DNA of 64,000 bases from Haliotis rubra (Eukaryota), in assembly GCF_003918875.1 (NCBI RefSeq), contig NW_025767588.1:372001-436000 (forward strand), read 5' to 3'. Positions within the stretch are counted from its first letter, which is position 1. Every line of letters starts with the position of its first letter. Below the pieces are notes generated by a model. It was not told the DNA's origin. It saw only the letters and a program-made list of their open reading frames with translations, and made no database searches. This document shows, in pieces, positions 36,861-59,187 of this stretch. The translations under genes were made by a program, and so were the position numbers.

Positions 36861-37619
36861 CTAGATTAGTTCACAGAACAAGACTGAATTCATCGTCCAG
36901 TGGACAGAGTTAGTGAGTGAGTGAGTTGGGTTTTACAACATTTTCAGAAATACTCCAGCAACATCATAGGGGAAACACAGACATGGGCTTCACCTTCACA
37001 CAATGTACCCAAGTGGGCAGTTGAACCCGGGTCTTCTGCATGATTGGCGAACACTTTAACGACAAGGCTACCCCACCGCTCCTGGTGGACAGCACATTTT
37101 CCTGAAGAGCAGAAGGTCCAGTGTTTCATCCTTGGTCCTGTATTACCAAAAGACTTCTCAAAAATGGGATGAAAGAAGAACTTGCCTGCTTGCAGTCAGT
37201 ATACTCTCTGATTTGTGTATCCATTTTGCCAAACCCTGCCAAGGAATTTCACTGCGCTACCATCATCAGATGTGAATGCACACACACAAAAAAACAGACA
37301 TACAATGACACAAGCACAAAAACAAGACTATTGAAGTCATATATATGACGAAGACGTTAAATGCTATGTAGATGTTGAACCATACAGTGAAATCCCGATC
37401 CAAAATGCAAAACGAAATACTTTGATTTAGACCATGGTAAACACTTCCCCAATCATAAGGTTGAAACAAATCAACATAATTGTAAAGCCACATTAAACTC
37501 ATCAATAGCTACTACATTTGATCATGTAGACATTTTAGCAATAGAGAGATGTCAAGGAGATGCAACGAGAGATGTCAACAGATGAAGACTACGACAACTG
37601 CAACGTTAAGAATACGCAT
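36861..37619 (-). pseudogene. Relic paralog sharing promoter and exon 1 with the Gly/His gene but with a different exon 2
   Basis: Exon 1 MRILNVAVVVV with a 13-bp deletion of the donor; diverged homologous intron; acceptor ttcacat (versus ttcacag); phase-1 frame DDGSAVKFLGRVWQNGYTNQRVY*LQAGKFF...CSSGKCAVH[SINE]WTMNSVLFCELI*. Confidence 0.5.
36908..37084 (-). mobile_element. tRNA-headed SINE
   Basis: Head ggagcggtggggtagcc...cccgggttcaac (A/B-box-like), (ACTC)n tail, 8-bp TSD gtggacag (36900-36907 / 37085-37092). Confidence 0.8.
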
Positions 37620-39728
37620 CCTGCCTGTTACGTTTATCCACGAGAGAATAAACGATTTGAATGTCGCTTTTGTGATTCACCAGACCTTTATATACTTGTG
37701 GTACGGGAAAACAGGATGCTGAATGTACATGCCCACACTGGAAGATTTTAGAAATTAAAATTCCAAAAACACTTTTTACAACTATACAGCGTGAAAAGTG
37801 AATCTTTATTATGTAATTTGGCACGGGACGGTGTCGCCTGCCTCTCTATATTATGCATATCTTCCTGCATAATTATAAAAAGCAAGCTGTGGATTTGTGA
37901 CCTCACCTGGCACCCTGTGGCCAGCTCACTGTTGGGAAGCAATTCAGACTGCATGGTTCATCCAATGCAATTGCAGCTACAGAGGAGAACTGAAAAAATG
38001 AATGGAGAGAGAATGTATAAAATGGACGATAAATGTTGAACTTCACTATTGCGTTAAGTGCAAGTACTGAGTCTAGTGTGCTACCGTTACTGGAGTCAAG
38101 AACGTTCAGCAACGTATGACAAACACTAGATGTTTAATGGCACAGGTTATGGGAAGCAAATTATTCATTTTTCATGATTATACTTAATATGAAGTGGCGT
38201 GTTTCAAGTTAAAGATATATTTTCAAAATTGAAATTCCTACCTTTTATTTCAAAATCACATTGCCTTCTAGAAACGCTTTCCTTTTCTCTTATTAGCAAA
38301 TGTCAAATATATCTATTGGTAACCGTAAGCTCAGGTAGTGCAACAGTTACAAATCTCCCATCTCTTAAATGAAAGAAATCTCATCCCATGTCCCCAGGCA
38401 TTGATGCCACCGATAGCTATCCTGACACGGTCACGGAAGTTGAGGCAGCATGGGCTCGCTATGGCGCCCGAAGTATACATTTGGGTAGACACACAAAAAT
38501 ACAGAATAATACCAGCAGAGTGAAAGCTCAGGACATGTGCACTCACCGGGCACACATTTTCGGTTTCCTGGCCTAAAACACATAATTGTTTTAGGGAAAT
38601 CATGTCAACCCTGTCATCAAACTCTCTCATTTAACTTCATAGAGTGTGTTTTCTTGATAGCGTTTGTGTACGTTAGTGTACTGTGTAGGTGTGTCAGGTT
38701 TGTGTGTATGTGCAAGTGTATATTTGGGTGTGAAAGTTCAGGTTGCGTGAAATGTTATTTGGCTCAAACCTTACAAAATGCTTAAATGTAATTCAGTTTT
38801 CTGAAGAGTCGAAAACGAGCAGCTCTTGAACACCACACGTGGACATGACGACACTAAATGATCAAACGAATACATGGTGTAAGCACTCTCTCAACAGGAA
38901 CATGTACGTGGTGATAGTTTACAACAGGCACTGGCGGGTGCAACTGACAATCTAAACCCTTGTATCACCTCTTGATGATAGCAGGTCGTTAACAGGCATT
39001 GAATGGATATATACGCAAAGTATGGCCTGAAAGCCACGATAAAACACATATGTTGACTAGGTAACCACTTCCTTTTCGGGTAGTGGAAGTTGAACACACC
39101 AACACCAGTTCCGCACCAAATGTCACTTGCTTGAACATATCTCTGCAAACATTCGGCCAAAGTCATTGTGTTAAAAAAGACTGCACTAAATATTGAAAAA
39201 GTATGGTCAGTTTTATTCACCGAATGAATACACTTTTAACAAACACAAAAATCATCCAATCACAGCCATCAGATGATTCTGCCTGCACTGAAGGCTCCCT
39301 AGGAAGAGTTCTTAAATGACGGGATCTGATTTGGTGTAGTATAACTTCTTGGCCTTCCGGGTCATAGTAAAATTCAGGGGAGGTAACTGCGGTATAGGGC
39401 CTTCTAAGGGGAAGTCTGTTTACTTGAACATTCATATTGTGCTAGACTCTTGAAAAAAGAACCATCATTTATATTTGGTTTTGGCCCTTTTATGTAGAAC
39501 GTGTCGTTGCACGGCTGGAAATCAGCACTACCACACAAGCTCCTGTTGTTATCTTCAGTGCATGATTGCACTGACACACGTGTGTCACCTTTCGATTGGA
39601 CGGTTTAAAATATAAGTTAGGTGGACGCCACCTAACCATTCACTCGCATGGTTCAAAAGTAAGTCCTGAATTAGGATTGTACTTGAAAAATATTAAAGCA
39701 AAGAAATCATTACAGTATAAATCACAGC

Positions 39729-39734
39729 TTTATT
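39729..39734 (-). promoter_or_regulatory. Polyadenylation signal of Gly/His gene copy 1 (present in every unit)
   Basis: AATAAA on the minus strand ~113 nt past the stop. Confidence 0.7.
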
Positions 39735-39846
39735 TGTACTTGTTGAGGAATATACAGATTGGTTGGATGCAGCATGGTAAGTGAAATCCACAAATGTGAT
39801 ATCAAATGTCCAGCATTTGATGTGAATATTATGATCCTTGGATCTT

Positions 39847-40477
39847 TCAACCATGGTGTCCGCCTCCTCCATGACCACCTCCTCCATGGCCACCTCCTCC
39901 GTGACCACCTCCTCCGTGGCCTCCTCCATGGCCGCCACCTCCTCCGTGACCACCTCCTCCGTGGCCTCCTCCATGGCCGCCACCTCCATGACCACCACCA
40001 TGGCCGCCGCCTCCATGACCACCACCATGGCCTCCACCTCCATGGCCACCACCACCGTGGCCTCCACCTCCATGGCCACCACCACCATGGCCTCCACCTC
40101 CATGGCCACCACCACCATGGCCTCCACCTCCATGGCCACCACCACCACCATGGCCTCCGCCTCCATGGCCACCACCACCATGGCCACCAAAGACGGAGCC
40201 AAGGAAGACTGTGAAGAATGTAAAGAAACAAATACGTAAGTGGTCATATATATGACAGGACAAATGACCCATACAAAATCCCGCTACCAATCACGATACA
40301 TGATTAGACCATGGTAAACACTTCCCCAATCATAAGGTTGTCAACATAATTGTAAAGCCACATTAAACTCATCAATAGCTACTACATTTGATCATTAGGA
40401 GTTTTAGCAATGAGAGATGTCAACAGATGAGAAAACTTACCCAAGACTACGACAACTGCAACGTTAAGAATACGCAT
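39847..40477 (-). CDS. Secreted Gly/His-only protein copy 1, join(40477..40441,40208..39847), 132 aa
   Basis: MRILNVAVVVVL-G|gtaagt...ttcacag|TC-FLGSVFG followed by 112 aa of 88 G + 24 H; intact. Confidence 0.9.
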
Positions 40478-40544
40478 CCTGCCTGTTACGTTTATCCACG
40501 AGAGAATAAACGATTTGAATGTCGCTTTTGTGATTCACCAGACC

Positions 40545-40552
40545 TTTATATA
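40545..40552 (-). promoter_or_regulatory. TATA box of Gly/His gene (also at 37687, 43405, 46253, 49113, 51968, 54795, 57633)
   Basis: TATATAAAG ~32 nt upstream of an Inr-like CATTC and ~70 nt upstream of the ATG. Confidence 0.8.
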
Positions 40553-42704
40553 CTTGTGGTACGGGAAAACAGGATGCTGAATGTACATGCCCACACTGGA
40601 AGATTTTAGAAATTAAAATTCCAAAAACACTTTTTACAACTATACAGCGTGAAAAGTGAATCTTTATTATGTAATTGGGCACGGGACGGTGTCGCCTGCC
40701 TCTCTATATTATGCATATCTTCCTGCATAATTATAAAAGCAAGCTGTGGATTTGTGACCTCACCTGGCACCCTGTGGCCAGCTCACTGTTGGGAAGCAAT
40801 TCAGACTGCATGGTTCATCCAATGCAATTGCAGCTACAGAGGAGAACTGAAAAATGAATGGAGAGAGAATGTATAAAATGGACGATAAATGTTGAACTTC
40901 ACTATTGCGTTAAGTGCAAGTACTGAGTCTAGTGTGCTACCGTTACTGGAGTCAAGAACGTTCAGCAACGTATGACAAACACTAGATGTTTAATGGCACA
41001 GGTTATGGGAAGCAAATTATTCATTTTTCATGATTATACTTAATATGAAGTGGCGTGTTTCAAGTTAAAGATATATTTTCAAAATTGAAATTCCTACCTT
41101 TTTATTTCAAAATCACATTGCCTTCTAGAAACGCTTTCCTTTTCTCTTATTAGCAAATGTCAAATATATCTATTGGTAACCGTAAGCTCAGGTAGTGCAA
41201 CAGTTACAAATCTCCCATCTCTTAAATGAAAGAAATCTCATCCCATGTCCCCAGGCATTGATGCCACCGATAGCTATCCTGACACGGTCACGGAAGTTGA
41301 GGCAGCATGGGCTCGCTATGGCGCCCGAAGTATACATTTGGGTAGACACACAAAAATACAGAATAATACCAGCAGAGTGAAAGCTCAGGACATGTGCACT
41401 CACCGGGCACACATTTTCGGTTTCCTGGCCTAAAACACATAATTGTTTTTTAGGGAAATCATGTCAACCCTGTCATCAAACTCTCTCATTTAACTTCATA
41501 GAGTGTGTTTTCTTGATAGCGTTTGTGTACGTTAGTGTACTGTGTAGGTGTGTCAGGTTTGTGTGTATGTGCAAGTGTATATTTGGGTGTGAAAGTTCAG
41601 GTTGCGTGAAATGTTATTTGGCTCAAACCTTACAAAATGCTTAAATGTAATTCAGTTTTCTGAAGAGTCGAAAACGAGCAGCTCTTGAACACCACACGTG
41701 GACATGACGACACTAAATGATCAAACGAATACATGGTGTAAGCACTCTCTCAACAGGAACATGTACGTGGTGATAGTTTACAACAGGCACTGGCGGGTGC
41801 AACTGACAATCTAAACCCTTGTATCACCTCTTGATGATAGCAGGTCGTTAACAGGCATTGAATGGATATATACGCAAAGTATGGCCTGAAAGCCACGATA
41901 AAACACATATGTTGACTAGGTAACCACTTCCTTTTCGGGTAGTGGAAGTTGAACACACCAACACCAGTTCCGCACCAAATGTCACTTGCTTGAACATATC
42001 TCTGCAAACATTCGGCCAAAGTCATTGTGTTAAAAAGACTGCACTAAATATTGAAAAAGTATGGTCAGTTTTATTCACCGAATGAATACACTTTTAACAA
42101 ACACAAAAATCATCCAATCACAGCCATCAGATGATTCTGCCTGCACTGAAGGCTCCCTAGGAAGAGTTCTTAAATGACGGGATCTGATTTGGTGTAGTAT
42201 AACTTCTTGGCCTTCCGGGTCATAGTAAAATTCAGGGGAGGTAACTGCGGTATAGGGCCTTCTAAGGGGAAGTCTGTTTACTTGAACATTCATATTGTGC
42301 TAGACTCTTGAAAAAAGAACCATCATTTATATTTGGTTTTGGCCCTTTTATGTAGAACGTGTCGTTGCACGGCTGGAAATCAGCACTACCACACAAGCTC
42401 CTGTTGTTATCTTCAGTGCATGATTGCACTGACACACGTGTGTCACCTTTCGATTGGACGGTTTAAAATATAAGTTAGGTGGACGCCACCTAACCATTCA
42501 CTCGCATGGTTCAAAAGTAAGTCCTGAATTAGGATTGTACTTGAAAAATATTAAAGCAAAGAAATCATTACAGTATAAATCACAGCTTTATTTGTACTTG
42601 TTGAGGAATATACAGATTGGTTGGATGCAGCATGGTAAGTGAAATCCACAAATGTGATATCAAATGTCCAGCATTTGATGTGAATATTATGATCCTTGGA
42701 TCTT

Positions 42705-43337
42705 TCAACCATGGTGTCCGCCTCCTCCATGACCACCTCCTCCATGGCCACCTCCTCCGTGACCACCTCCTCCGTGGCCCTCCTCCATGGCCGCCACCTC
42801 CTCCGTGACCACCTCCTCCGTGGCCTCCTCCATGGCCGCCACCTCCATGACCACCACCATGGCCGCCGCCTCCATGACCACCACCATGGCCGCCGCCTCC
42901 ATGACCACCACCACCGTGGCCCTCCACCTCCATGGCCACCACCACCATGGCCTCCACCTCCATGGCCACCACCACCATGGCCTCCACCTCCATGGCCACC
43001 ACCACCACCATGGCCTCCGCCTCCATGGCCACCACCACCATGGCCACCAAAGACGGAGCCAAGGAAGACTGTGAAGAATGTAAAGAAACAAATACGTAAG
43101 TGGTCATATATATGACAGGACAAATGACCCATACAAAATCCCGCTACCAATCACGATACATGATTAGACCATGGTAAACACTTCCCCAATCATAAGGTTG
43201 TCAACATAATTGTAAAGCCACATTAAACTCATCAATAGCTACTACATTTGATCATTAGGAGTTTTAGCAATGAGAGATGTCAACAGATGAGAAAACTTAC
43301 CCAAGACTACGACAACTGCAACGTTAAGAATACGCAT
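42705..43337 (-). CDS. Gly/His protein copy 2, join(43337..43301,43068..42705); two +1 indels (~42780, ~42921)
   Basis: Same gene structure; extra C in ggccc runs (error or pseudogene). Confidence 0.75.
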
Positions 43338-45565
43338 CCTGCCTGTTACGTTTATCCACGAGAGAATAAACGATTTGAATGTCGCTTTTGTGATTCACCA
43401 GACCTTTATATACTTGTGGTACGGGAAAACAGGATGCTGAATGTACATGCCCACACTGGAAGATTTTAGAAATTAAAATTCCAAAAACACTTTTTACAAC
43501 TATACAGCGTGAAAAGTGAATCTTTATTATGTAATTGGGCACGGGACGGTGTCGCCTGCCTCTCTATATTATGCATATCTTCCTGCATAATTATAAAAAG
43601 CAAGCTGTGGATTTGTGACCTCACCTGGCACCCTGTGGCCAGCTCACTGTTGGGAAGCAATTCAGACTGCATGGTTCATCCAATGCAATTGCAGCTACAG
43701 AGGAGAACTGAAAAAATGAATGGAGAGAGAATGTATAAAATGGACGATAAATGTTGAACTTCACTATTGCGTTAAGTGCAAGTACTGAGTCTAGTGTGCT
43801 ACCGTTACTGGAGTCAAGAACGTTCAGCAACGTATGACAAACACTAGATGTTTAATGGCACAGGTTATGGGAAGCAAATTATTCATTTTTCATGATTATA
43901 CTTAATATGAAGTGGCGTGTTTCAAGTTAAAGATATATTTTCAAAATTGAAATTCCTACCTTTTTATTTCAAAATCACATTGCCTTCTAGAAACGCTTTC
44001 CTTTTCTCTTATTAGCAAATGTCAAATATATCTATTGGTAACCGTAAGCTCAGGTAGTGCAACAGTTACAAATCTCCCATCTCTTAAATGAAAGAAATCT
44101 CATCCCATGTCCCCAGGCATTGATGCCACCGATAGCTATCCTGACACGGTCACGGAAGTTGAGGCAGCATGGGCTCGCTATGGCGCCCGAAGTATACATT
44201 TGGGTAGACACACAAAAATACAGAATAATACCAGCAGAGTGAAAGCTCAGGACATGTGCACTCACCGGGCACACATTTTCGGTTTCCTGGCCTAAAACAC
44301 ATAATTGTTTTTAGGGAAATCATGTCAACCCTGTCATCAAACTCTCTCATTTAACTTCATAGAGTGTGTTTTCTTGATAGCGTTTGTGTACGTTAGTGTA
44401 CTGTGTAGGTGTGTCAGGTTTGTGTGTATGTGCAAGTGTATATTTGGGTGTGAAAGTTCAGGTTGCGTGAAATGTTATTTGGCTCAAACCTTACAAAATG
44501 CTTAAATGTAATTCAGTTTTCTGAAGAGTCGAAAACGAGCAGCTCTTGAACACCACACGTGGACATGACGACACTAAATGATCAAACGAATACATGGTGT
44601 AAGCACTCTCTCAACAGGAACATGTACGTGGTGATAGTTTACAACAGGCACTGGCGGGTGCAACTGACAATCTAAACCCTTGTATCACCTCTTGATGATA
44701 GCAGGTCGTTAACAGGCATTGAATGGATATATACGCAAAGTATGGCCTGAAAGCCACGATAAAACACATATGTTGACTAGGTAACCACTTCCTTTTCGGG
44801 TAGTGGAAGTTGAACACACCAACACCAGTTCCGCACCAAATGTCACTTGCTTGAACATATCTCTGCAAACATTCGGCCAAAGTCATTGTGTTAAAAAGAC
44901 TGCACTAAATATTGAAAAAGTATGGTCAGTTTTATTCACCGAATGAATACACTTTTAACAAACACAAAAATCATCCAATCACAGCCATCAGATGATTCTG
45001 CCTGCACTGAAGGCTCCCTAGGAAGAGTTCTTAAATGACGGGATCTGATTTGGTGTAGTATAACTTCTTGGCCTTCCGGGTCATAGTAAAATTCAGGGGA
45101 GGTAACTGCGGTATAGGGCCTTCTAAGGGGAAGTCTGTTTACTTGAACATTCATATTGTGCTAGACTCTTGAAAAAAGAACCATCATTTATATTTGGTTT
45201 TGGCCCTTTTATGTAGAACGTGTCGTTGCACGGCTGGAAATCAGCACTACCACACAAGCTCCTGTTGTTATCTTCAGTGCATGATTGCACTGACACACGT
45301 GTGTCACCTTTCGATTGGACGGTTTAAAATATAAGTTAGGTGGACGCCACCTAACCATTCACTCGCATGGTTCAAAAGTAAGTCCTGAATTAGGATTGTA
45401 CTTGAAAAATATTAAAGCAAAGAAATCATTACAGTATAAATCACAGCTTTATTTGTACTTGTTGAGGAATATACAGATTGGTTGGATGCAGCATGGTAAG
45501 TGAAATCCACAAATGTGATATCAAATGTCCAGCATTTGATGTGAATATTATGATCCTTGGATCTT

Positions 45566-46185
45566 TCAACCATGGTGTCCGCCTCCTCCATGACCACCTC
45601 CTCCATGGCCACCTCCTCCGTGACCACCTCCTCCGTGGCCTCCTCCATGGCCGCCACCTCCTCCGTGACCACCTCCTCCGTGGCCTCCTCCATGGCCGCC
45701 ACCTCCATGACCACCACCATGGCCGCCGCCTCCATGACCACCACCATGGGCCGCCCACCTCCACCGTGGCCTCCCACCACCATGGCCACCACCCATGGCC
45801 TCCACCTCCATGGCCACCACCACCATGGCCTCCACCTCCATGGCCACCACCACCACCATGGCCTCCGCCTCCATGGCCACCACCACCATGGCCACCAAAG
45901 ACGGAGCCAAGGAAGACTGTGAAGAATGTAAAGAAACAAATACGTAAGTGGTCATATATATGACAGGACAAATGACCCATACAAAATCCCGCTACCAATC
46001 ACGATACATGATTAGACCATGGTAAACACTTCCCCAATCATAAGGTTGTCAACATAATTGTAAAGCCACATTAAACTCATCAATAGCTACTACATTTGAT
46101 CATTAGGAGTTTTAGCAATGAGAGATGTCAACAGATGAGAAAACTTACCCAAGACTACGACAACTGCAACGTTAAGAATACGCAT
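45566..46185 (-). CDS. Gly/His protein copy 3, join(46185..46149,45916..45566); frameshifted/garbled ~45748-45800
   Basis: Same gene structure; cluster of homopolymer indels. Confidence 0.72.
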
Positions 46186-48417
46186 CCTGCCTGTTACGTT
46201 TATCCACGAGAGAATAAACGATTTGAATGTCGCTTTTGTGATTCACCAGACCTTTATATACTTGTGGTACGGGAAAACAGGATGCTGAATGTACATGCCC
46301 ACACTGGAAGATTTTAGAAATTAAAATTCCAAAAACACTTTTTTACAACTATACAGCGTGAAAAGTGAATCTTTATTATGTAATTGGGCACGGGACGGTG
46401 TCGCCTGCCTCTCTATATTATGCATATCTTCCTGCATAATTATAAAAAGCAAGCTGTGGATTTGTGACCTCACCTGGCACCCTGTGGCCAGCTCACTGTT
46501 GGGAAGCAATTCAGACTGCATGGTTCATCCAATGCAATTGCAGCTACAGAGGAGAACTGAAAAAATGAATGGAGAGAGAATGTATAAAATGGACGATAAA
46601 TGTTGAACTTCACTATTGCGTTAAGTGCAAGTACTGAGTCTAGTGTGCTACCGTTACTGGAGTCAAGAACGTTCAGCAACGTATGACAAACACTAGATGT
46701 TTAATGGCACAGGTTATGGGAAGCAAATTATTCATTTTTCATGATTATACTTAATATGAAGTGGCGTGTTTCAAGTTAAAGATATATTTTCAAAATTGAA
46801 ATTCCTACCTTTTTATTTCAAAATCACATTGCCTTCTAGAAACGCTTTCCTTTTCTCTTATTAGCAAATGTCAAATATATCTATTGGTAACCGTAAGCTC
46901 AGGTAGTGCAACAGTTACAAATCTCCCATCTCTTAAATGAAAGAAATCTCATCCCATGTCCCCAGGCATTGATGCCACCGATAGCTATCCTGACACGGTC
47001 ACGGAAGTTGAGGCAGCATGGGCTCGCTATGGCGCCCGAAGTATACATTTGGGTAGACACACAAAAATACAGAATAATACCAGCAGAGTGAAAGCTCAGG
47101 ACATGTGCACTCACCGGGCACACATTTTCGGTTTCCTGGCCTAAAACACATAATTGTTTTTAGGGAAATCATGTCAACCCTGTCATCAAACTCTCTCATT
47201 TAACTTCATAGAGTGTGTTTTCTTGATAGCGTTTGTGTACGTTAGTGTACTGTGTAGGTGTGTCAGGTTTGTGTGTATGTGCAAGTGTATATTTGGGTGT
47301 GAAAGTTCAGGTTGCGTGAAATGTTATTTGGCTCAAACCTTACAAAATGCTTAAATGTAATTCAGTTTTCTGAAGAGTCGAAAACGAGCAGCTCTTGAAC
47401 ACCACACGTGGACATGACGACACTAAATGATCAAACGAATACATGGTGTAAGCACTCTCTCAACAGGAACATGTACGTGGTGATAGTTTACAACAGGCAC
47501 TGGCGGGTGCAACTGACAATCTAAACCCTTGTATCACCTCTTGATGATAGCAGGTCGTTAACAGGCATTGAATGGATATATACGCAAAGTATGGCCTGAA
47601 AGCCACGATAAAACACATATGTTGACTAGGTAACCACTTCCTTTTCGGGTAGTGGAAGTTGAACACACCAACACCAGTTCCGCACCAAATGTCACTTGCT
47701 TGAACATATCTCTGCAAACATTCGGCCAAAGTCATTGTGTAAAAAAAAGACTGCACTAAATATTGAAAAAGTATGGTCAGTTTTATTCACCGAATGAATA
47801 CACTTTTAACAAACACAAAATCATCCAATCACAGCCATCAGATGATTCTGCCTGCACTGAAGGCTCCCTAGGAAGAGTTCTTAAATGACGGGATCTGATT
47901 TGGTGTAGTATAACTATCTTGGCCTTCCGGGTCATAGTAAAATTCAGGGGAGGTAACTGCGGTATAGGGCCTTCTAAGGGGAAGTCTGTTTACTTGAACA
48001 TTCATATTGTGCTAGACTCTTGAAAAAAGAACCATCATTTATATTTGGTTTTGGCCCTTTTATGTAGAACGTGTCGTTGCACGGCTGGAAATCAGCACTA
48101 CCACACAAGCTCCTGTTGTTATCTTCAGTGCATGATTGCACTGACACACGTGTCACCTTTCGATTGGACGGTTTAAAATATAAGTTAGGTGGACGCCACC
48201 TAACCATTCACTCGCATGGTTCAAAAGTAAGTCCTGAATTAGGATTGTACTTGAAAAATATTAAAGCAAAGAAATCATTACAGTATAAATCACAGCTTTA
48301 TTTGTACTTGTTGAGGAATATACAGATTGGTTGGATGCAGCAGCATGGTAAGTGAAATCCACAAATGTGATATCAAATGTCCAGCATTTGATGTGAATAT
48401 TATGATCCTTGGATCTT

Positions 48418-49045
48418 TCAACCATGGTGTCCGCCTCCTCCATGACCACCTCCTCCATGGCCACCTCCTCCGTGACCACCTCCTCCGTGGCCTCCTCCAT
48501 GGCCGCCACCTCCTCCGTGACCACCTCCTCCGTGGCCTCCTCCATGGCCGCCACCTCCATGACCACCACCATGGCCGCCGCCTCCATGACCACCACCATG
48601 GCCGCCGCCTCCATGACCACCACCGTGGCCTCCACCTCCATGGCCACCACCACCATGGCCTCCACCTCCATGGCCACCACCACCATGGCCTCCACCTCCA
48701 TGGCCACCACCACCACCATGGCCTCCGCCTCCATGGCCACCACCACCATGGCCACCAAAGACGGAGCCAAGGAAGACTGTGAAGAATGTAAAGAAACAAA
48801 TACGTAAGTGGTCATATATATGACAGGACAAATGACCCATACAAAATCCCGCTACCAATCACGATACATGATTAGACCATGGTAAACACTTCCCCAATCA
48901 TAAGGTTGTCAACATAATTGTAAAGCCACATTAAACTCATCAATAGCTACTACATTTGATCATTAGGAGTTTTAGCAATGAGAGATGTCAACAGATGAGA
49001 AAACTTACCCAAGACTACGACAACTGCAACGTTAAGAATACGCAT
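48418..49045 (-). CDS. Gly/His protein copy 4, join(49045..49009,48776..48418), 131 aa
   Basis: Intact. Confidence 0.9.
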
Positions 49046-51272
49046 CCTGCCTGTTACGTTTATCCACGAGAGAATAAACGATTTGAATGTCGCTTTTGTG
49101 ATTCACCAGACCTTTATATACTTGTGGTACGGGAAAACAGGATGCTGAATGTACATGCCCACACTGGAAGATTTTAGAAATTAAAATTCCAAAAACACTT
49201 TTTACAACTATACAGCGTGAAAAGTGAATCTTTATTATGTAATTGGGCACGGGACGGTGTCGCCTGCCTCTCTATATTATGCATATCTTCCTGCATAATT
49301 ATAAAAAGCAAGCTGTGGATTTGTGACCTCACCTGGCACCCTGTGGCCAGCTCACTGTTGGGAAGCAATTCAGACTGCATGGTTCATCCAATGCAATTGC
49401 AGCTACAGAGGAGAACTGAAAAAATGAATGGAGAGAGAATGTATAAAATGGACGATAAATGTTGAACTTCACTATTGCGTTAAGTGCAAGTACTGAGTCT
49501 AGTGTGCTACCGTTACTGGAGTCAAGAACGTTCAGCAACGTATGACAAACACTAGATGTTTAATGGCACAGGTTATGGGAAGCAAATTATTCATTTTTCA
49601 TGATTATACTTAATATGAAGTGGCGTGTTTCAAGTTAAAGATATATTTTCAAAATTGAAATTCCTACCTTTTTATTTCAAAATCACATTGCCTTCTAGAA
49701 ACGCTTTCCTTTTCTCTTATTAGCAAATGTCAAATATATCTATTGGTAACCGTAAGCTCAGGTAGTGCAACAGTTACAAATCTCCCATCTCTTAAATGAA
49801 AGAAATCTCATCCCATGTCCCCAGGCATTGATGCCACCGATAGCTATCCTGACACGGTCACGGAAGTTGAGGCAGCATGGGCTCGCTATGGCGCCCGAAG
49901 TATACATTTGGGTAGACACACAAAAATACAGAATAATACCAGCAGAGTGAAAGCTCAGGACATGTGCACTCACCGGGCACACATTTTCGGTTTCCTGGCC
50001 TAAAACACATAATTGTTTTTAGGGAAATCATGTCAACCCTGTCATCAAACTCTCTCATTTAACTTCATAGAGTGTGTTTTCTTGATAGCGTTTGTGTACG
50101 TTAGTGTACTGTGTAGGTGTGTCAGGTTTGTGTGTATGTGCAAGTGTATATTTGGGTGTGAAAGTTCAGGTTGCGTGAAATGTTATTTGGCTCAAACCTT
50201 ACAAAATGCTTAAATGTAATTCAGTTTTCTGAAGAGTCGAAAACGAGCAGCTCTTGAACACCACACGTGGACATGACGACACTAAATGATCAAACGAATA
50301 CATGGTGTAAGCACTCTCTCAACAGGAACATGTACGTGGTGATAGTTTACAACAGGCACTGGCGGGTGCAACTGACAATCTAAACCCTTGTATCACCTCT
50401 TGATGATAGCAGGTCGTTAACAGGCATTGAATGGATATATACGCAAAGTATGGCCTGAAAGCCACGATAAAACACATATGTTGACTAGGTAACCACTTCC
50501 TTTTCGGGTAGTGGAAGTTGAACACACCAACACCAGTTCCGCACCAAATGTCACTTGCTTGAACATATCTCTGCAAACATTCGGCCAAAGTCATTGTGTT
50601 AAAAAGACTGCACTAAATATTGAAAAGTATGGTCAGTTTTATTCACCGAATGAATACACTTTTAACAAACACAAAAATCATCCAATCACAGCCATCAGAT
50701 GATTCTGCCTGCACTGAAGGCTCCCTAGGAAGAGTTCTTAAATGACGGGATCTGATTTGGTGTAGTATAACTTCTTGGCCTTCCGGGTCATAGTAAAATT
50801 CAGGGGAGGTAACTGCGGTATAGGGCCTTCTAAGGGGAAGTCTGTTTACTTGAACATTCATATTGTGCTAGACTCTTGAAAAAAGAACCATCATTTATAT
50901 TTGGTTTTGGCCCTTTTATGTAGAACGTGTCGTTGCACGGCTGGAAATCAGCACTACCACACAAGCTCCTGTTGTTATCTTCAGTGCATGATTGCACTGA
51001 CACACGTGTGTCACCTTTCGATTGGACGGTTTAAAATATAAGTTAGGTGGACGCCACCTAACCATTCACTCGCATGGTTCAAAAGTAAGTCCTGAATTAG
51101 GATTGTACTTGAAAAATATTAAAGCAAAGAAATCATTACAGTATAAATCACAGCTTTATTTGTACTTGTTGAGGAATATACAGATTGGTTGGATGCAGCA
51201 TGGTAAGTGAAATCCACAAATGTGATATCAAATGTCCAGCATTTGATGTGAATATTATGATCCTTGGATCTT

Positions 51273-51900
51273 TCAACCATGGTGTCCGCCTCCTCCATGA
51301 CCACCTCCTCCATGGCCACCTCCTCCGTGACCACCTCCTCCGTGGCCTCCTCCATGGCCGCCACCTCCTCCGTGACCACCTCCTCCGTGGCCTCCTCCAT
51401 GGCCGCCACCTCCATGACCACCACCATGGCCGCCGCCTCCATGACCACCACCATGGCCGCCGCCTCCATGACCACCACCGTGGCCTCCACCTCCATGGCC
51501 ACCACCACCATGGCCTCCACCTCCATGGCCACCACCACCATGGCCTCCACCTCCATGGCCACCACCACCACCATGGCCTCCGCCTCCATGGCCACCACCA
51601 CCATGGCCACCAAAGACGGAGCCAAGGAAGACTGTGAAGAATGTAAAGAAACAAATACGTAAGTGGTCATATATATGACAGGACAAATGACCCATACAAA
51701 ATCCCGCTACCAATCACGATACATGATTAGACCATGGTAAACACTTCCCCAATCATAAGGTTGTCAACATAATTGTAAAGCCACATTAAACTCATCAATA
51801 GCTACTACATTTGATCATTAGGAGTTTTAGCAATGAGAGATGTCAACAGATGAGAAAACTTACCCAAGACTACGACAACTGCAACGTTAAGAATACGCAT
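51273..51900 (-). CDS. Gly/His protein copy 5, join(51900..51864,51631..51273), 131 aa
   Basis: Intact. Confidence 0.9.
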
Positions 51901-54129
51901 CCTGCCTGTTACGTTTATCCACGAGAGAATAAACGATTTGAATGTCGCTTTTGTGATTCACCAGACCTTTATATACTTGTGGTACGGGAAAACAGGATGC
52001 TGAATGTACATGCCCACACTGGAAGATTTTAGAAATTAAAATTCCAAAAACACTTTTTACAACTATACAGCGTGAAAAGTGAATCTTTATTATGTAATTG
52101 GGCACGGGACGGTGTCGCCTGCCTCTCTATATTATGCATATCTTCCTGCATAATTATAAAAAGCAAGCTGTGGATTTGTGACCTCACCTGGCACCCTGTG
52201 GCCAGCTCACTGTTGGGAAGCAATTCAGACTGCATGGTTCATCCAATGCAATTGCAGCTACAGAGGAGAACTGAAAAAATGAATGGAGAGAGAATGTATA
52301 AAATGGACGATAAATGTTGAACTTCACTATTGCGTTAAGTGCAAGTACTGAGTCTAGTGTGCTACCGTTACTGGAGTCAAGAACGTTCAGCAACGTATGA
52401 CAAACACTAGATGTTTAATGGCACAGGTTATGGGAAGCAAATTATTCATTTTTCATGATTATACTTAATATGAAGTGGCGTGTTTCAAGTTAAAGATATA
52501 TTTTCAAAATTGAAATTCCTACCTTTTTATTTCAAAATCACATTGCCTTCTAGAAACGCTTTCCTTTTCTCTTATTAGCAAATGTCAAATATATCTATTG
52601 GTAACCGTAAGCTCAGGTAGTGCAACAGTTACAAATCTCCCATCTCTTAAATGAAAGAAATCTCATCCCATGTCCCCAGGCATTGATGCCACCGATAGCT
52701 ATCATGACACGGTCACGGAAGTTGAGGCAGCATGGGCTCGCTATGGCGCCCGAAGTATACATTTGGGTAGACACACAAAAATACAGAATAATACCAGCAG
52801 AGTGAAAGCTCAGGACATGTGCACTCACCGGGCACACATTTTCGGTTTCCTGGCCTAAAACACATAATTGTTTTTAGGGAAATCATGTCAACCCTGTCAT
52901 CAAACTCTCTCATTTAACTTCATAGAGTGTGTTTTCTTGATAGCGTTTGTGTACGTTAGTGTACTGTGTAGGTGTGTCAGGTTTGTGTGTATGTGCAAGT
53001 GTATATTTGGGTGTGAAAGTTCAGGTTGCGTGAAATGTTATTTGGCTCAAACCTTACAAAATGCTTAAATGTAATTCAGTTTTCTGAAGAGTCGAAAACG
53101 AGCAGCTCTTGAACACCACACGTGGACATGACGACACTAAATGATCAAACGAATACATGGTGTAAGCACTCTCTCAACAGGAACATGTACGTGGTGATAG
53201 TTTACAACAGGCACTGGCGGGTGCAACTGACAATCTAAACCCTTGTATCACCTCTTGATGATAGCAGGTCGTTAACAGGCATTGAATGGATATATACGCA
53301 AAGTATGGCCTGAAAGCCACGATAAAACACATATGTTGACTAGGTAACCACTTCCTTTTCGGGTAGTGGAAGTTGAACACACCAACACCAGTTCCGCACC
53401 AAATGTCACTTGCTTGAACATATCTCTGCAAACATTCGGCCAAAGTCATTGTGTTAAAAAAGACTGCACTAAATATTGAAAAAGTATGGTCAGTTTTATT
53501 CACCGAATGAATACACTTTTAACAAACACAAAAATCATCCAATCACAGCCATCAGATGATTCTGCCTGCACTGAAGGCTCCCTAGGAAGAGTTCTTAAAT
53601 GACGGGATCTGATTTGGTGTAGTATAACTTCTTGGCCTTCCGGGTCATAGTAAAATTCAGGGGAGGTAACTGCGGTATAGGGCCTTCTAAGGGGAAGTCT
53701 GTTTACTTGAACATTCATATTGTGCTAGACTCTTGAAAAAAGAACCATCATTTATATTTGGTTTTGGCCCTTTTATGTAGAACGTGTCGTTGCACGGCTG
53801 GAAATCAGCACTACCACACAAGCTCCTGTTGTTATCTTCAGTGCATGATTGCACTGACACACGTGTGTCACCTTTCGATTGGACGGTTTAAAATATAAGT
53901 TAGGTGGACGCCACCTAACCATTCACTCGCATGGTTCAAAAGTAAGTCCTGAATTAGGATTGTACTTGAAAAATATTAAAGCAAAGAAATCATTACAGTA
54001 TAAATCACAGCTTTATTTGTACTTGTTGAGGAATATACAGATTGGTTGGATGCAGCATGGTAAGTGAAATCCACAAATGTGATATCAAATGTCCAGCATT
54101 TGATGTGAATATTATGATCCTTGGATCTT

Positions 54130-54727
54130 TCAACCATGGTGTCCGCCTCCTCCATGACCACCTCCTCCATGGCCACCTCCTCCGTGACCACCTCCTCCGT
54201 GACCACCTCCTCCGTGGCCTCCTCCATGGCCGCCACCTCCATGACCACCACCATGGCCGCCGCCTCCATGACCACCACCATGGCCGCCGCCTCCATGACC
54301 ACCACCGTGGCCTCCACCTCCATGGCCACCACCACCATGGCCTCCACCTCCATGGCCACCACCACCATGGCCTCCACCTCCATGGCCACCACCACCACCA
54401 TGGCCTCCGCCTCCATGGCCACCACCACCATGGCCACCAAAGACGGAGCCAAGGAAGACTGTGAAGAATGTAAAGAAACAAATACGTAAGTGGTCATATA
54501 TATGACAGGACAAATGACCCATACAAAATCCCGCTACCAATCACGATACATGATTAGACCATGGTAAACACTTCCCCAATCATAAGGTTGTCAACATAAT
54601 TGTAAAGCCACATTAAACTCATCAATAGCTACTACATTTGATCATTAGGAGTTTTAGCAATGAGAGATGTCAACAGATGAGAAAACTTACCCAAGACTAC
54701 GACAACTGCAACGTTAAGAATACGCAT
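54130..54727 (-). CDS. Gly/His protein copy 6, join(54727..54691,54458..54130), 121 aa
   Basis: Intact; in-frame 30-nt shorter than copies 4 and 5. Confidence 0.9.
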
Positions 54728-56954
54728 CCTGCCTGTTACGTTTATCCACGAGAGAATAAACGATTTGAATGTCGCTTTTGTGATTCACCAGACCTTTATA
54801 TACTTGTGGTACGGGAAAACAGGATGCTGAATGTACATGCCCACACTGGAAGATTTTAGAAATTAAAATTCCAAAAACACTTTTTACAACTATACAGCGT
54901 GAAAAGTGAATCTTTATTATGTAATTGGGCACGGGACGGTGTCGCCTGCCTCTCTATATTATGCATATCTTCCTGCATAATTATAAAAGCAAGCTGTGGA
55001 TTTGTGACCTCACCTGGCACCCTGTGGCCAGCTCACTGTTGGGAAGCAATTCAGACTGCATGGTTCATCCAATGCAATTGCAGCTACAGAGGAGAACTGA
55101 AAAAATGAATGGAGAGAGAATGTATAAAATGGACGATAAATGTTGAACTTCACTATTGCGTTAAGTGCAAGTACTGAGTCTAGTGTGCTACCGTTACTGG
55201 AGTCAAGAACGTTCAGCAACGTATGACAAACACTAGATGTTTAATGGCACAGGTTATGGGAAGCAAATTATTCATTTTCATGATTATACTTAATATGAAG
55301 TGGCGTGTTTCAAGTTAAAGATATATTTTCAAAATTGAAATTCCTACCTTTTATTTCAAAATCACATTGCCTTCTAGAAACGCTTTCCTTTTCTCTTATT
55401 AGCAAATGTCAAATATATCTATTGGTAACCGTAAGCTCAGGTAGTGCAACAGTTACAAATCTCCCATCTCTTAAATGAAAGAAATCTCATCCCATGTCCC
55501 CAGGCATTGATGCCACCGATAGCTATCATGACACGGTCACGGAAGTTGAGGCAGCATGGGCTCGCTATGGCGCCCGAAGTATACATTTGGGTAGACACAC
55601 AAAAATACAGAATAATACCAGCAGAGTGAAAGCTCAGGACATGTGCACTCACCGGGCACACATTTTCGGTTTCCTGGCCTAAAACACATAATTGTTTTAG
55701 GGAAATCATGTCAACCCTGTCATCAAACTCTCTCATTTAACTTCATAGAGTGTGTTTTCTTGATAGCGTTTGTGTACGTTAGTGTACTGTGTAGGTGTGT
55801 CAGGTTTGTGTGTATGTGCAAGTGTATATTTGGGTGTGAAAGTTCAGGTTGCGTGAAATGTTATTTGGCTCAAACCTTACAAAATGCTTAAATGTAATTC
55901 AGTTTTCTGAAGAGTCGAAAACGAGCAGCTCTTGAACACCACACGTGGACATGACGACACTAAATGATCAAACGAATACATGGTGTAAGCACTCTCTCAA
56001 CAGGAACATGTACGTGGTGATAGTTTACAACAGGCACTGGCGGGTGCAACTGACAATCTAAACCCTTGTATCACCTCTTGATGATAGCAGGTCGTTAACA
56101 GGCATTGAATGGATATATACGCAAAGTATGGCCTGAAAGCCACGATAAAACACATATGTTGACTAGGTAACCACTTCCTTTTCGGGTAGTGGAAGTTGAA
56201 CACACCAACACCAGTTCCGCACCAAATGTCACTTGCTTGAACATATCTCTGCAAACATTCGGCCAAAGTCATTGTGTTAAAAAAGACTGCACTAAATATT
56301 GAAAAAGTATGGTCAGTTTTATTCACCGAATGAATACACTTTTAACAAACACAAAAATCATCCAATCACAGCCATCAGATGATTCTGCCTGCACTGAAGG
56401 CTCCCTAGGAAGAGTTCTTAAATGACGGGATCTGATTTGGTGTAGTATAACTTCTTGGCCTTCCGGGTCATAGTAAAATTCAGGGGAGGTAACTGCGGTA
56501 TAGGGCCTTCTAAGGGGAAGTCTGTTTACTTGAACATTCATATTGTGCTAGACTCTTGAAAAAAGAACCATCATTTATATTTGGTTTTGGGCCCTTTTTA
56601 TGTAGAACGTGTCGTTGCACGGCTGGAAATCAGCACTACCACACAAGCTCCTGTTGTTATCTTCAGTGCATGATTGCACTGACACACGTGTGTCACCTTT
56701 CGATTGGACGGTTTAAAATATAAGTTAGGTGGACGCCACCTAACCATTCACTCGCATGGTTCAAAAGTAAGTCCTGAATTAGGATTGTACTTGAAAAATA
56801 TTAAAGCAAAGAAATCATTACAGTATAAATCACAGCTTTATTTGTACTTGTTGAGGAATATACAGATTGGTTGGATGCAGCATGGTAAGTGAAATCCACA
56901 AATGTGATATCAAATGTCCAGCATTTGATGTGAATATTATGATCCTTGGATCTT

Positions 56955-57565
56955 TCAACCATGGTGTCCGCCTCCTCCATGGCCACCTCCTCCGTGACCA
57001 CCTCCTCCGTGGCCTCCTCCATGGCCGCGGCCTCCTCCATGGCCACCACCTCCTCCGTGGCCTCCTCCATGGCCACCACCCTCCATGACCACCATGGCCG
57101 CCGCCTCCATGACCACCACCATGGCCGCCGCCTCCATGACCACCACCATGGCCGCCGCCTCCATGACCACCACCATGGCCTCCACCTCCATGGCCACCAC
57201 CACCATGGCCTCCACCTCCATGGCCACCACCACCACCATGGCCTCCGCCTCCATGGCCACCACCACCATGGCCACCAAAGACGGAGCCAAGGAAGACTGT
57301 GAAGAATGTAAAGAAACAAATACGTAAGTGGTCATATATATGACAGGACAAATGACCCATACAAAATCCCGCTACCAATCACGATACATGATTAGACCAT
57401 GGTAAACACTTCCCCAATCATAAGGTTGTCAACATAATTGTAAAGCCACATTAAACTCATCAATAGCTACTACATTTGATCATTAGGAGTTTTAGCAATG
57501 AGAGATGTCAACAGATGAGAAAACTTACCCAAGACTACGACAACTGCAACGTTAAGAATACGCAT
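56955..57565 (-). CDS. Gly/His protein copy 7, join(57565..57529,57296..56955); frameshift ~57080
   Basis: Same gene structure; most divergent repeat order, one apparent Arg codon. Confidence 0.72.
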
Positions 57566-58299
57566 CCTGCCTGTTACGTTTATCCACGAGAGAATAAACG
57601 ATTTGAATGTCGCTTTTGTGATTCACCAGACCTTTATATACTTGTGGTACGGGAAAACAGGATGCTGAATGTACATGCCCACACTGGAAGATTTTAGAAA
57701 TTAAAATTCCAAAAACACTTTTTACAACTATACAGCGTGAAAAGTGAATCTTTATTATGTAATTGGGCACGGGACGGTGTCGCCTGCCTCTCTATATTAT
57801 GCATATCTTCCTGCATAATTATAAAAAGCAAGCTGTGGATTTGTGACCTCACCTGGCACCCTGTGGCCAGCTCACTGTTGGGAAGCAATTCAGACTGCAT
57901 GGTTCATCCAATGCAATTGCAGCTACAGAGGAGAACTGAAAAAATGAATGGAGAGAGAATGTATAAAATGGACGATAAATGTTGAACTTCACTATTGCGT
58001 TAAGTGCAAGTACTGAGTCTAGTGTGCTACCGTTACTGGAGTCAAGAACGTTCAGCAACTTATGACAAACACTAGATGTTTAATGGCACAGGTTATGGGA
58101 AGCAAATTATTCATTTTTCATGATTATACTTAATATGAAGTGGCGTGTTTCAAGTTAAAGATATATTTTCAAAATTGAAATTCCTACCTTTTTATTTCAA
58201 AATCACATTGCCTTCTAGAAACCCTTTCCTTTTCTTTATTAGCAAATGTCAAATATATCTATTGGTAACCGTAAGCTCAGGTAGTGCAACAGTTACAAA

Positions 58300-59187
58300 T
58301 CTCCCATCTCTTAAATGAAAGAAATCTCATCCCATGTCCCCAGGCATTGATGCCACCGATAGCTATCATGACACGGTCACGGAAGTTGAGGCAGCATGGG
58401 CTCGCTATGGCGCCCGAAGTATACATTTGGGTAGACACACAAAAATACAGAATAATACCAGCAGAGTGAAAGCTCAGGACATGTGCACTCACCGGGCACA
58501 CATTTTCGGTTTCCTGGCCTAAAACACATAATTGTTTTAGGGAAATCATGTCAACCCTGTCATCAAACTCTCTCATTTAACTTCATAGAGTGTGTTTTCT
58601 TGATAGCGTTTGTGTACGTTAGTGTACTGTGTAGGTGTGCCAGGTTTGTGTGTATGTGCAAGTGTATATTTGGGTGTGAAAGTTCAGGTTGCGTTAAATG
58701 TTAGTTGGCTCAAACCTTACAAAATGCTTAAATGTAATACAGTTTTCTGAAGAGTCGAAAACGAGCAGCTCTTGAACACCACACGTGGACATGAGTGCCC
58801 TAAACTATGAATTATAATCATTAACTTATTTTGAACCGAACCCCGATAACAAGTTGAAAATCTGTAAGACATCGCCAAGGCCAGACATCTCACAAAGGCA
58901 ATGAAGAGCGTCAGGTGAGCTTCAAACGTTTGAACTATATCAGCCAATGTCGTCAAACACAAATGCACATCACTGTCTTGGAATCCTTCCAACATTAAGG
59001 CATTCATCGTCATCAAGGAGAGAGTGTCGATTACAATATCCACAAAATTGAAGTAGTTCAACTGTCATGATGACCTTGAATTCATTTTGGAAAGAACATA
59101 TACGTTTATCGAGTTTCCAATAATGCCCAGTAAACACAGTGCGATCCCAACACATATACATACTTTTGTGAAGTATACAGATCCCAT
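58300..59187 (-). pseudogene. Rhodopsin-like (class A) GPCR pseudogene, intronless; 3' part duplicated in every array unit
   Basis: TM1 CVGIALCLLGIIGNSINVYVL, in-frame stop at 59065, TM2 NFVDIVID, TM3 LTLFIAFVRCLAL (DRY-like); weaker TM6-like AFTLLVLFCIFVCLPK near 58420-58473. Confidence 0.7.

Follow-up and report, generated by a model that had tools for sequence, protein, structure and literature searches.

Secreted proteins rich in glycine and histidine are studied as model systems both for antifungals activated by metal and for biomaterials that are coordinated by metal, heal themselves and separate into phases, and to our knowledge every characterised example carries further residue types that complicate mechanism. 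A 64,000-nucleotide (nt) stretch of DNA from the mollusc Haliotis rubra (contig NW_025767588.1, positions 372,001 to 436,000; hereafter the window, in which all coordinates are given) raises the question of whether a natural secreted chain can consist of glycine and histidine (G/H) and nothing else. A preliminary description of this stretch had proposed a minus-strand, two-exon gene for such a protein and had suggested a metal-binding, biomaterial or antimicrobial role. Our analysis favours, at a probability of roughly 0.6, a lineage-restricted, tandemly amplified coding gene whose product would be a secreted, disordered G/H chain switched by metal and pH; defence is our first, tentative guess at its role. 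The minus-strand gene, its transcription, its signal-peptide-like leader and the extreme purity of its product were all borne out, while the function is still something that we infer.

Each element of the proposed gene lies where it had been placed, including the TATA-type box TATATAAA, an initiator (Inr)-like site, the ATG, the 37-nt first exon, the donor, a 232-nt intron, the acceptor and an AATAAA signal (Table 1). The start codon at 40477 has an A at position −3, and the splice signals, a G/GTAAGT donor and a tttctttacattcttcacag/TC acceptor (slashes mark exon–intron boundaries), conform to the canonical GT-AG pattern. Joining exons 1 and 2 in phase 1 rebuilds a valine codon and keeps the frame open, yielding a spliced model of 132 amino acids (aa), of which the first 20 resemble a signal peptide and the other 112 form the chain. 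We reproduced the proposed composition of this chain from the sequence: residues 21–132 are 88 Gly and 24 His with no other residue, and single His are separated by Gly runs of three to five. A scan for open reading frames (ORFs) misses the gene, as had been argued, since the listed ORF 39847–40290 continues past the acceptor into intronic sequence. Within the window we detected no processed (intronless) copy, and an Rfam scan of the same sequence returned no RNA family.

RNA-labelled sequencing runs from three organisms match parts of the gene, and we examined the contigs of four of these runs (X1, X2, X4 and X6). The minus strand gives rise to a transcript that is polyadenylated where predicted and that reaches high depth in one RNA library. 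From X1, a run whose contigs total only 1.5 Mb, comes a 295-nt contig (depth 118) that reads from the repeat through the stop codon into the 3′ untranslated region (UTR) and carries, on the plus strand, 25 T abutting position 39710, where the genome has only 4 T in 25. Because this tract is not in the genome, the tail is non-templated, and the minus-strand transcript is therefore cleaved 19 nt after AATAAA and polyadenylated, in agreement with the preliminary description. A gene on the opposite strand was ruled out, since the poly(A) tail belongs to the minus-strand transcript. RNA contigs reach the 3′ two-thirds of exon 2, and both X1 and X2 contain a variant of the repeat that differs in length by 45 nt, in frame. 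Over the intron, depth is zero in the contigs of X1, X2 and X4, and a 197-nt X1 contig (depth 2.1) stops precisely on the final base of exon 1 (40441), an end that may mark a fork in the de Bruijn assembly graph, for example between spliced and unspliced continuations. We regard splicing of 40441 to 40208 as strongly indicated, short of proof.

Scans of metagenome contigs for the exact spliced junction and for exon 1 with its donor gave no match. As a silent-stretch control we used a 1.8-kb spacer (40700–42500), of which shares of 0.83, 0.33 and 0.13 were found in DNA runs of organisms E, D and A and a share of 0.06 in a seawater metagenome, the last presumably host environmental DNA; none of the RNA runs matching the gene matched the spacer, in a search mode that is not dedicated to RNA. 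The share of 0.83 makes organism E the probable species of origin of the window. A separate X1 contig (89 nt, depth 4.3), aligning at about 40007, passes from the G/H repeat into 41 nt of unrelated sequence, a hint that organism A has a further G/H-repeat transcript from another genomic locus.

The focal gene is one unit of a tandem array, a feature absent from the preliminary description. The array comprises seven full copies, a truncated eighth cassette at its low end and 1.2 kb of extra upstream spacer at its high end, and Tandem Repeats Finder reported the same 15-nt coding repeat seven times at a spacing of about 2.86 kb. Exon 1 and its donor are identical to the letter at the start codons 57565, 54727, 51900, 49045, 46185, 43337 and 40477, and the units share 97.6–99.7% identity, with differences falling nearly all within the G/H repeat. 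Intact products of 132, 131, 131 and 121 aa are encoded by four of the seven full copies, each pure G/H after a 20-residue leader. The eighth cassette has lost the GGTAAGTTTTCT donor and has no G/H exon; it retains about 197 nt resembling the intron (85% identity), beyond which the sequence is unrelated.

Patterns of variation point to a protein under selection. In a contig from organism C, a sister species, the intron segment 40289–40440 carries 20 substitutions in 152 positions (13%), against 3 in 132 (2–3%) across exon 1, the 5′ UTR and the promoter (Fisher p = 7.6e-4). The sole change in exon 1 is synonymous (AAC to AAT), and the TATA box is unchanged, with the nearest differences at 40563 and 40542. 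DNA runs of sister species kept a larger share of 31-mers over the gene stretch than over the spacer (0.35 versus 0.13 for organism A and 0.46 versus 0.32 for organism D). The codons of the repeat all begin with GG or CA, their first two positions being invariant, and all 58 deviations are synonymous third-position changes; none of 200,000 simulations with equally many random substitutions stayed pure G/H, a significance that is overstated because the repeat units arose by duplication and their substitutions are not independent. We found no non-synonymous variant in the in-frame portions of any array copy (583 codons), and the observed length differences, 3, 30 and 33 nt among intact copies and 45 nt in the RNA variant, are all multiples of three. 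Taken together, conservation, synonymous-only variation and in-frame length changes favour a protein under selection over a minisatellite evolving neutrally. We are highly confident that this is a real, expressed gene, consider a two-exon structure very likely, and judge that the product is likely to be a secreted chain of pure G/H.

The precursor has the features of a simple signal peptide in a heuristic check, with Arg at position 2, a hydrophobic core of 15–17 residues within residues 3–19 (Kyte–Doolittle 9-mer means up to 3.7) and agreement with the −3/−1 rule at a putative cleavage site after G20 (VFG/GH, with V at −3 and G at −1). The mature chain has a mass of 8.33 kDa and a computed charge of about +24 at pH 4, +16 at pH 6, +4 at pH 7 and near 0 at pH 8.1. 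AlphaFold2 predicted no fold (predicted local distance difference test score 47.6, predicted template modelling score 0.10), consistent with an intrinsically disordered chain. No internal processing is expected, because the chain has neither dibasic sites nor any residue besides Gly and His. We take the mature Gly-His N-terminus to resemble the Xaa-His Cu(II) site of the peptide GHK, and the C-terminal Gly could presumably act as an amide donor.

These properties suggest a model in which each 2.86-kb unit would supply a TATA-type promoter, a 37-nt coding exon, a phase-1 intron splitting the signal peptide and a (G3-5 H)24 exon. The precursor would enter the secretory pathway and be cleaved after VFG to release a disordered polypeptide of about 8.3 kDa that would present 24 imidazoles on a maximally flexible backbone. 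This chain would carry a strong positive charge below pH 6.5 (about +16 to +24) and almost none at the pH of seawater, and numerous shifting multi-His sites could allow it to chelate Zn, Cu or Ni. Given pH-dependent charge and multi-His chelation, protonation or metal would be expected to switch the chain between a soluble and a condensed state, either coacervate or fibril, and by analogy with known Gly/His proteins we propose a proton- and metal-switched extracellular polymer. Its use in extracellular defence, as a shepherin- or holotricin-like effector at high dosage that acts as a metal-dependent antimicrobial or antifungal or by metal sequestration, is a tentative assignment by analogy that the small size, lack of crosslinkable residues, multicopy array and very high transcript abundance would all fit; no specific biological role can be put more strongly than this. 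At slightly less than even odds, the protein would be the purest natural poly-imidazole chain described, undergoing phase separation or fibril formation triggered by protons, Zn or Cu in defence or in a material, and independent in origin of the Gly/His proteins of plants, insects and annelids. If so, a strictly binary chain of about 8 kDa would offer a minimal natural system for the effects of imidazole spacing, which could be tested for Zn and Cu binding, pH-gated condensation and antimicrobial action.

Several observations weigh against this interpretation. Among the contigs of X1, X2, X4 and X6 none joins 40441 to 40208, the first 60 nt of exon 2 have no RNA coverage, and the contig ending in exon 1 has a depth of 2.1 compared with 118 at the 3′ end. 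A 3′-biased library, which the steep 3′-to-5′ drop in depth suggests, would explain the thin 5′ coverage. RNA contigs of low depth run upstream past the TATA box as far as 40572 and 40637, the exon-1 contig by 85 nt, and may reflect read-through across the array, carried-over DNA or a start site further upstream. Unspliced sequence covers the intron in the organism C contig (X6, depth 4.9), which could represent pre-mRNA, array read-through or DNA. Three of the seven full copies are frameshifted by 1–2-nt indels in G-runs, which resemble the homopolymer errors of long reads and may be such errors or else real changes. On the functional side, the chain is not cationic at seawater pH, unlike classical antimicrobial peptides (AMPs), and standard antibacterial assays showed no activity for a G/H-rich peptide from a helminth (PMC10414684). 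A further contrary point is that an ATG at 40272, within the intron, is in frame with the G/H region and is followed by no stop before it.

That ATG would permit a single-exon gene, in which translation begins at 40272 with the N-terminus MGHLSCHIYDHLR followed by a hydrophobic stretch, and exon 1 and the TATA box are unrelated to the product. The pyrimidine tract does translate into a hydrophobic, signal-like stretch, and in the unspliced organism C contig the ATG and the codons after it are recognisable, with two third-position differences. We nevertheless consider this arrangement improbable. The start context is poor (T at −3, as opposed to A at −3 for the ATG at 40477), no TATA box lies upstream, and the exact look-up of the predicted product found no record. 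A single exon also does not account for the 13% divergence of 40289–40440 beside 2–3% in exon 1 and the promoter, and it sits poorly with zero RNA depth over 40209–40290 in X1, X2 and X4 and leaves unexplained an RNA contig that ends exactly at the donor. A still more sceptical account, in which the locus is an expressed minisatellite unit giving a non-coding transcript or no stable protein and the G/H frame is a by-product of a GGN/CAY repeat, draws on the 15-nt tandem repeat, the loss of frame in three of seven copies and the lack of a homologue in homology searches. It is very unlikely, in view of variation restricted to synonymous sites and in-frame indels, a hydrophobic leader completed across a phase-matched canonical intron, a stop codon placed directly after the repeat, and an exon 1 conserved across species with a synonymous change only.

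With a secreted G/H protein granted, other functions compete with defence. By analogy with the Glycera jaw multi-tasking protein (MTP), the Nereis jaw protein Nvjp-1 and squid-beak HBPs, the chain could be one component of a His-metal-crosslinked or coacervating extracellular matrix that is hard or adhesive (jaw, radula, periostracum, operculum, egg capsule or pedal adhesive, for instance). Bulk secretion would be well served by the tandem amplification and the very high transcript depth, neutrality at seawater pH combined with positive charge at acidic granule pH would provide a condensation switch triggered by secretion, and the composition is near that of MTP and Nvjp-1, which are documented to phase-separate or form fibrils in response to metal (PMC9999432). 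A structural role is unlikely, if credible, as the chain is 8.3 kDa where jaw proteins are 30–40 kDa, lacks Tyr, Lys, Asp, Glu and Ala for covalent or ionic crosslinks, and has Gly runs of three to five where those of MTP never exceed two. It is less plausible still that the chain mainly scavenges, stores or detoxifies extracellular Zn, Cu or Ni, or buffers protons, for example during calcification. The 24 His with pKa near 6–6.5 and the absence of any other functional side chain would suit such a buffer, and GGH repeats are documented to bind metal through several His in a polymorphic manner (PMC10698721), yet known metal-storage His-rich proteins are usually intracellular and the seven gene copies would not be readily accounted for. 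A tandemly amplified gene for a metal- and pH-switched defence effector is the reading that we prefer.

Upstream of the array, positions 1–36830 contain many plus-strand cadherin-domain exons, with PF00028 matches in the ORFs 3867–4763, 16542–16973 and 36261–36758. This giant plus-strand cadherin gene abuts the G/H array at its 3′ end, and the array lies downstream in the opposite orientation. Three large minisatellites, at 18374–19755 (32-nt unit, about 41 copies), 34573–36048 (43-nt unit, about 33 copies) and 32175–32680 (251-nt unit, 2 copies), probably sit in cadherin introns. A plus-strand ORF of 271 aa at 489–1304 has a weak, sub-threshold match to a phage-integrase SAM-like N-terminal domain (E 3e-3) and could be what is left of a mobile element encoding a tyrosine recombinase.

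Table 1. Features of the focal G/H gene (minus strand, 40552–39710) and of the tandem array that contains it, in window coordinates.
Feature	Position	Strand	Basis or remarks
TATA-type box TATATAAA, putative promoter	40545..40552	-	Sequence; same letters in the organism C contig
Inr-like ACATTC	40522-40517	-	30 nt downstream of TATATAAA
Predicted 5′ UTR, ~43 nt	40478..40520	-	Start inferred from TATA/Inr spacing
Exon 1, coding part, 37 nt	40441..40477	-	ATG plus 12 codons (MRILNVAVVVVL) plus first base of the split Val codon; phase-1 end
GT-AG intron, 232 nt	40209..40440	-	GTAAGT donor, pyrimidine tract, ttcacag acceptor
Exon 2, coding part	39847..40208	-	(V)FLGSVFG, 112 G/H residues, HHG, TGA at 39849-39847
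3′ UTR	39710..39846	-	AATAAA at 39734-39729; poly(A) addition at ~39710
Tandem array	37423..58794	-	Self-BLAST of one unit; units 2.83-2.86 kb, spacing ~2.86 kb
Frameshifted copy	56955..57565	-	G/H frame lost near codon 86 (~57078), small indels in G-runs
Intact copy, 121 aa	54130..54727	-	ATG 54727, exon 1 end 54691, exon 2 54458-54130
Intact copy, 131 aa	51273..51900	-	
Intact copy, 131 aa	48418..49045	-	
Frameshifted copy	45566..46185	-	G/H frame lost near codon 55 (~45791)
Frameshifted copy	42705..43337	-	G/H frame lost near codon 63 (~42919), single-G insertions
Decayed eighth cassette	37423..37700 (or to 37720)	-	Promoter and exon 1 (ATG 37619) kept; array edge

Homology searches with exon 2, with the read-through ORF at E ≤ 10 and by phmmer against 1.84 billion representatives returned compositional matches only, under compositional filters that blunt every search using a G/H query. 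These matches were bacterial exported (GGGGH)n proteins and a plant glycine-rich protein (GRP), a Capsicum PF07172 protein; MRILN and FLGSVFG were absent from all of them, and their pure G/H runs did not exceed 61 aa. Scanning the exon-2 product against Pfam gave no family at E ≤ 1, the best score in an ESM Atlas look-up was 0.71, and literature searches gave no relevant match for the repeat, the signal peptide or the junction peptide and nothing comparable in the papers examined on mollusc shell, radula and AMPs. The suggestion that the protein is probably unannotated agrees with three very large protein searches, which yielded no annotated protein of this kind, and the locus illustrates how low-complexity genes with a split signal peptide slip past both ORF scans and homology-based annotation. 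Among bacteria, many exported proteins (P0005, P0019, P0047, P0077, P0114, P0120 and others) place (GGGGH)n directly after a signal peptide, and several are labelled as TIGR03000 family; they are unrelated and represent recurrent use of the same motif.

Known Gly/His systems place this protein in context, with shepherin I, Glycera MTP and Nereis Nvjp-1 its nearest counterparts in composition. The insect antifungal peptides holotricin-3 and tenecin-3, about 80 aa long, are secreted in defence and rich in Gly and His, but also contain Gln, Leu, Tyr, Pro and Asp. Protein searches, in which compositional filters blunt the query and no pairwise comparison was made, gave no match to either; shepherin and the class to which they belong are named together in PMC5031766. 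Nematode NLP/CNC-type peptides are Gly/Tyr-rich and much shorter than the Gly/His-only chain described here. They are encoded in gene clusters. These peptides are small, Gly-rich, low-complexity defence peptides with signal peptides and many paralogues (PMC10414684).

Shepherin I, from the root of Capsella bursa-pastoris, is alike in being near-binary Gly/His and in deriving from a secreted, glycine-rich precursor; it has 28 aa with a single Tyr, is built of GGH-type repeats and ends in GGGGHG. Imidazoles spaced regularly along a flexible chain bind both Cu(II) and Zn(II) at shifting multi-His sites; shepherin I takes up Cu(II) in this way, and on binding Zn(II) it forms fibrils, the Zn-fibril form alone being strongly antifungal (PMC10698721). 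It is, however, a plant peptide only a quarter as long as the present chain, with His spaced as GGH where the present chain has G3-5H, and it is freed from its precursor by cuts at residues other than G and H, of which the present chain has none; we detected no homology between them. Nor does the protein belong with plant GRP/shepherin precursors, as PF07172 gave no match and no non-G/H linker lies between signal peptide and stop codon.

Among the polychaete jaw proteins, Glycera dibranchiata MTP is 49% Gly and 40% His (89% G+H), has Gly runs never longer than two, binds Cu and undergoes Cu-induced liquid–liquid phase separation (PMC9999432). The present chain differs in its 8.3-kDa size, its 100% G/H composition and its Gly runs of three to five, and shows no detected homology to MTP. 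Nereis virens Nvjp-1 is 36% Gly and 27% His (63% G+H), has a mass of 32–40 kDa and contains substantial Asp, Glu and Tyr (PMC9999432), and a rise in pH together with Zn drives its beta-rich, amyloid-like assembly (PMC9999432; PMC9465683). It shares Gly/His-rich repeats ([GGH] and [GH]n) with the present chain but is larger and less pure. The G+H majority that these jaw proteins carry behind a signal peptide is found here too (mature chain 100% G+H), and the chain departs from them in size (8.33 kDa), in minority residues and in the rule on Gly runs. By published compositions it is purer than Glycera MTP, Nvjp-1 and shepherin I, as the preliminary description had supposed in calling it a stricter binary chain than known examples. 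By analogy, the protein would resemble shepherin and the jaw proteins in its workings while lying outside their families, and we rate it as a convergent, lineage-restricted, compositionally extreme and tandemly amplified Gly/His secreted protein, through which, if this is correct, a mollusc lineage would join the apparently repeated convergent evolution of Gly/His composition.

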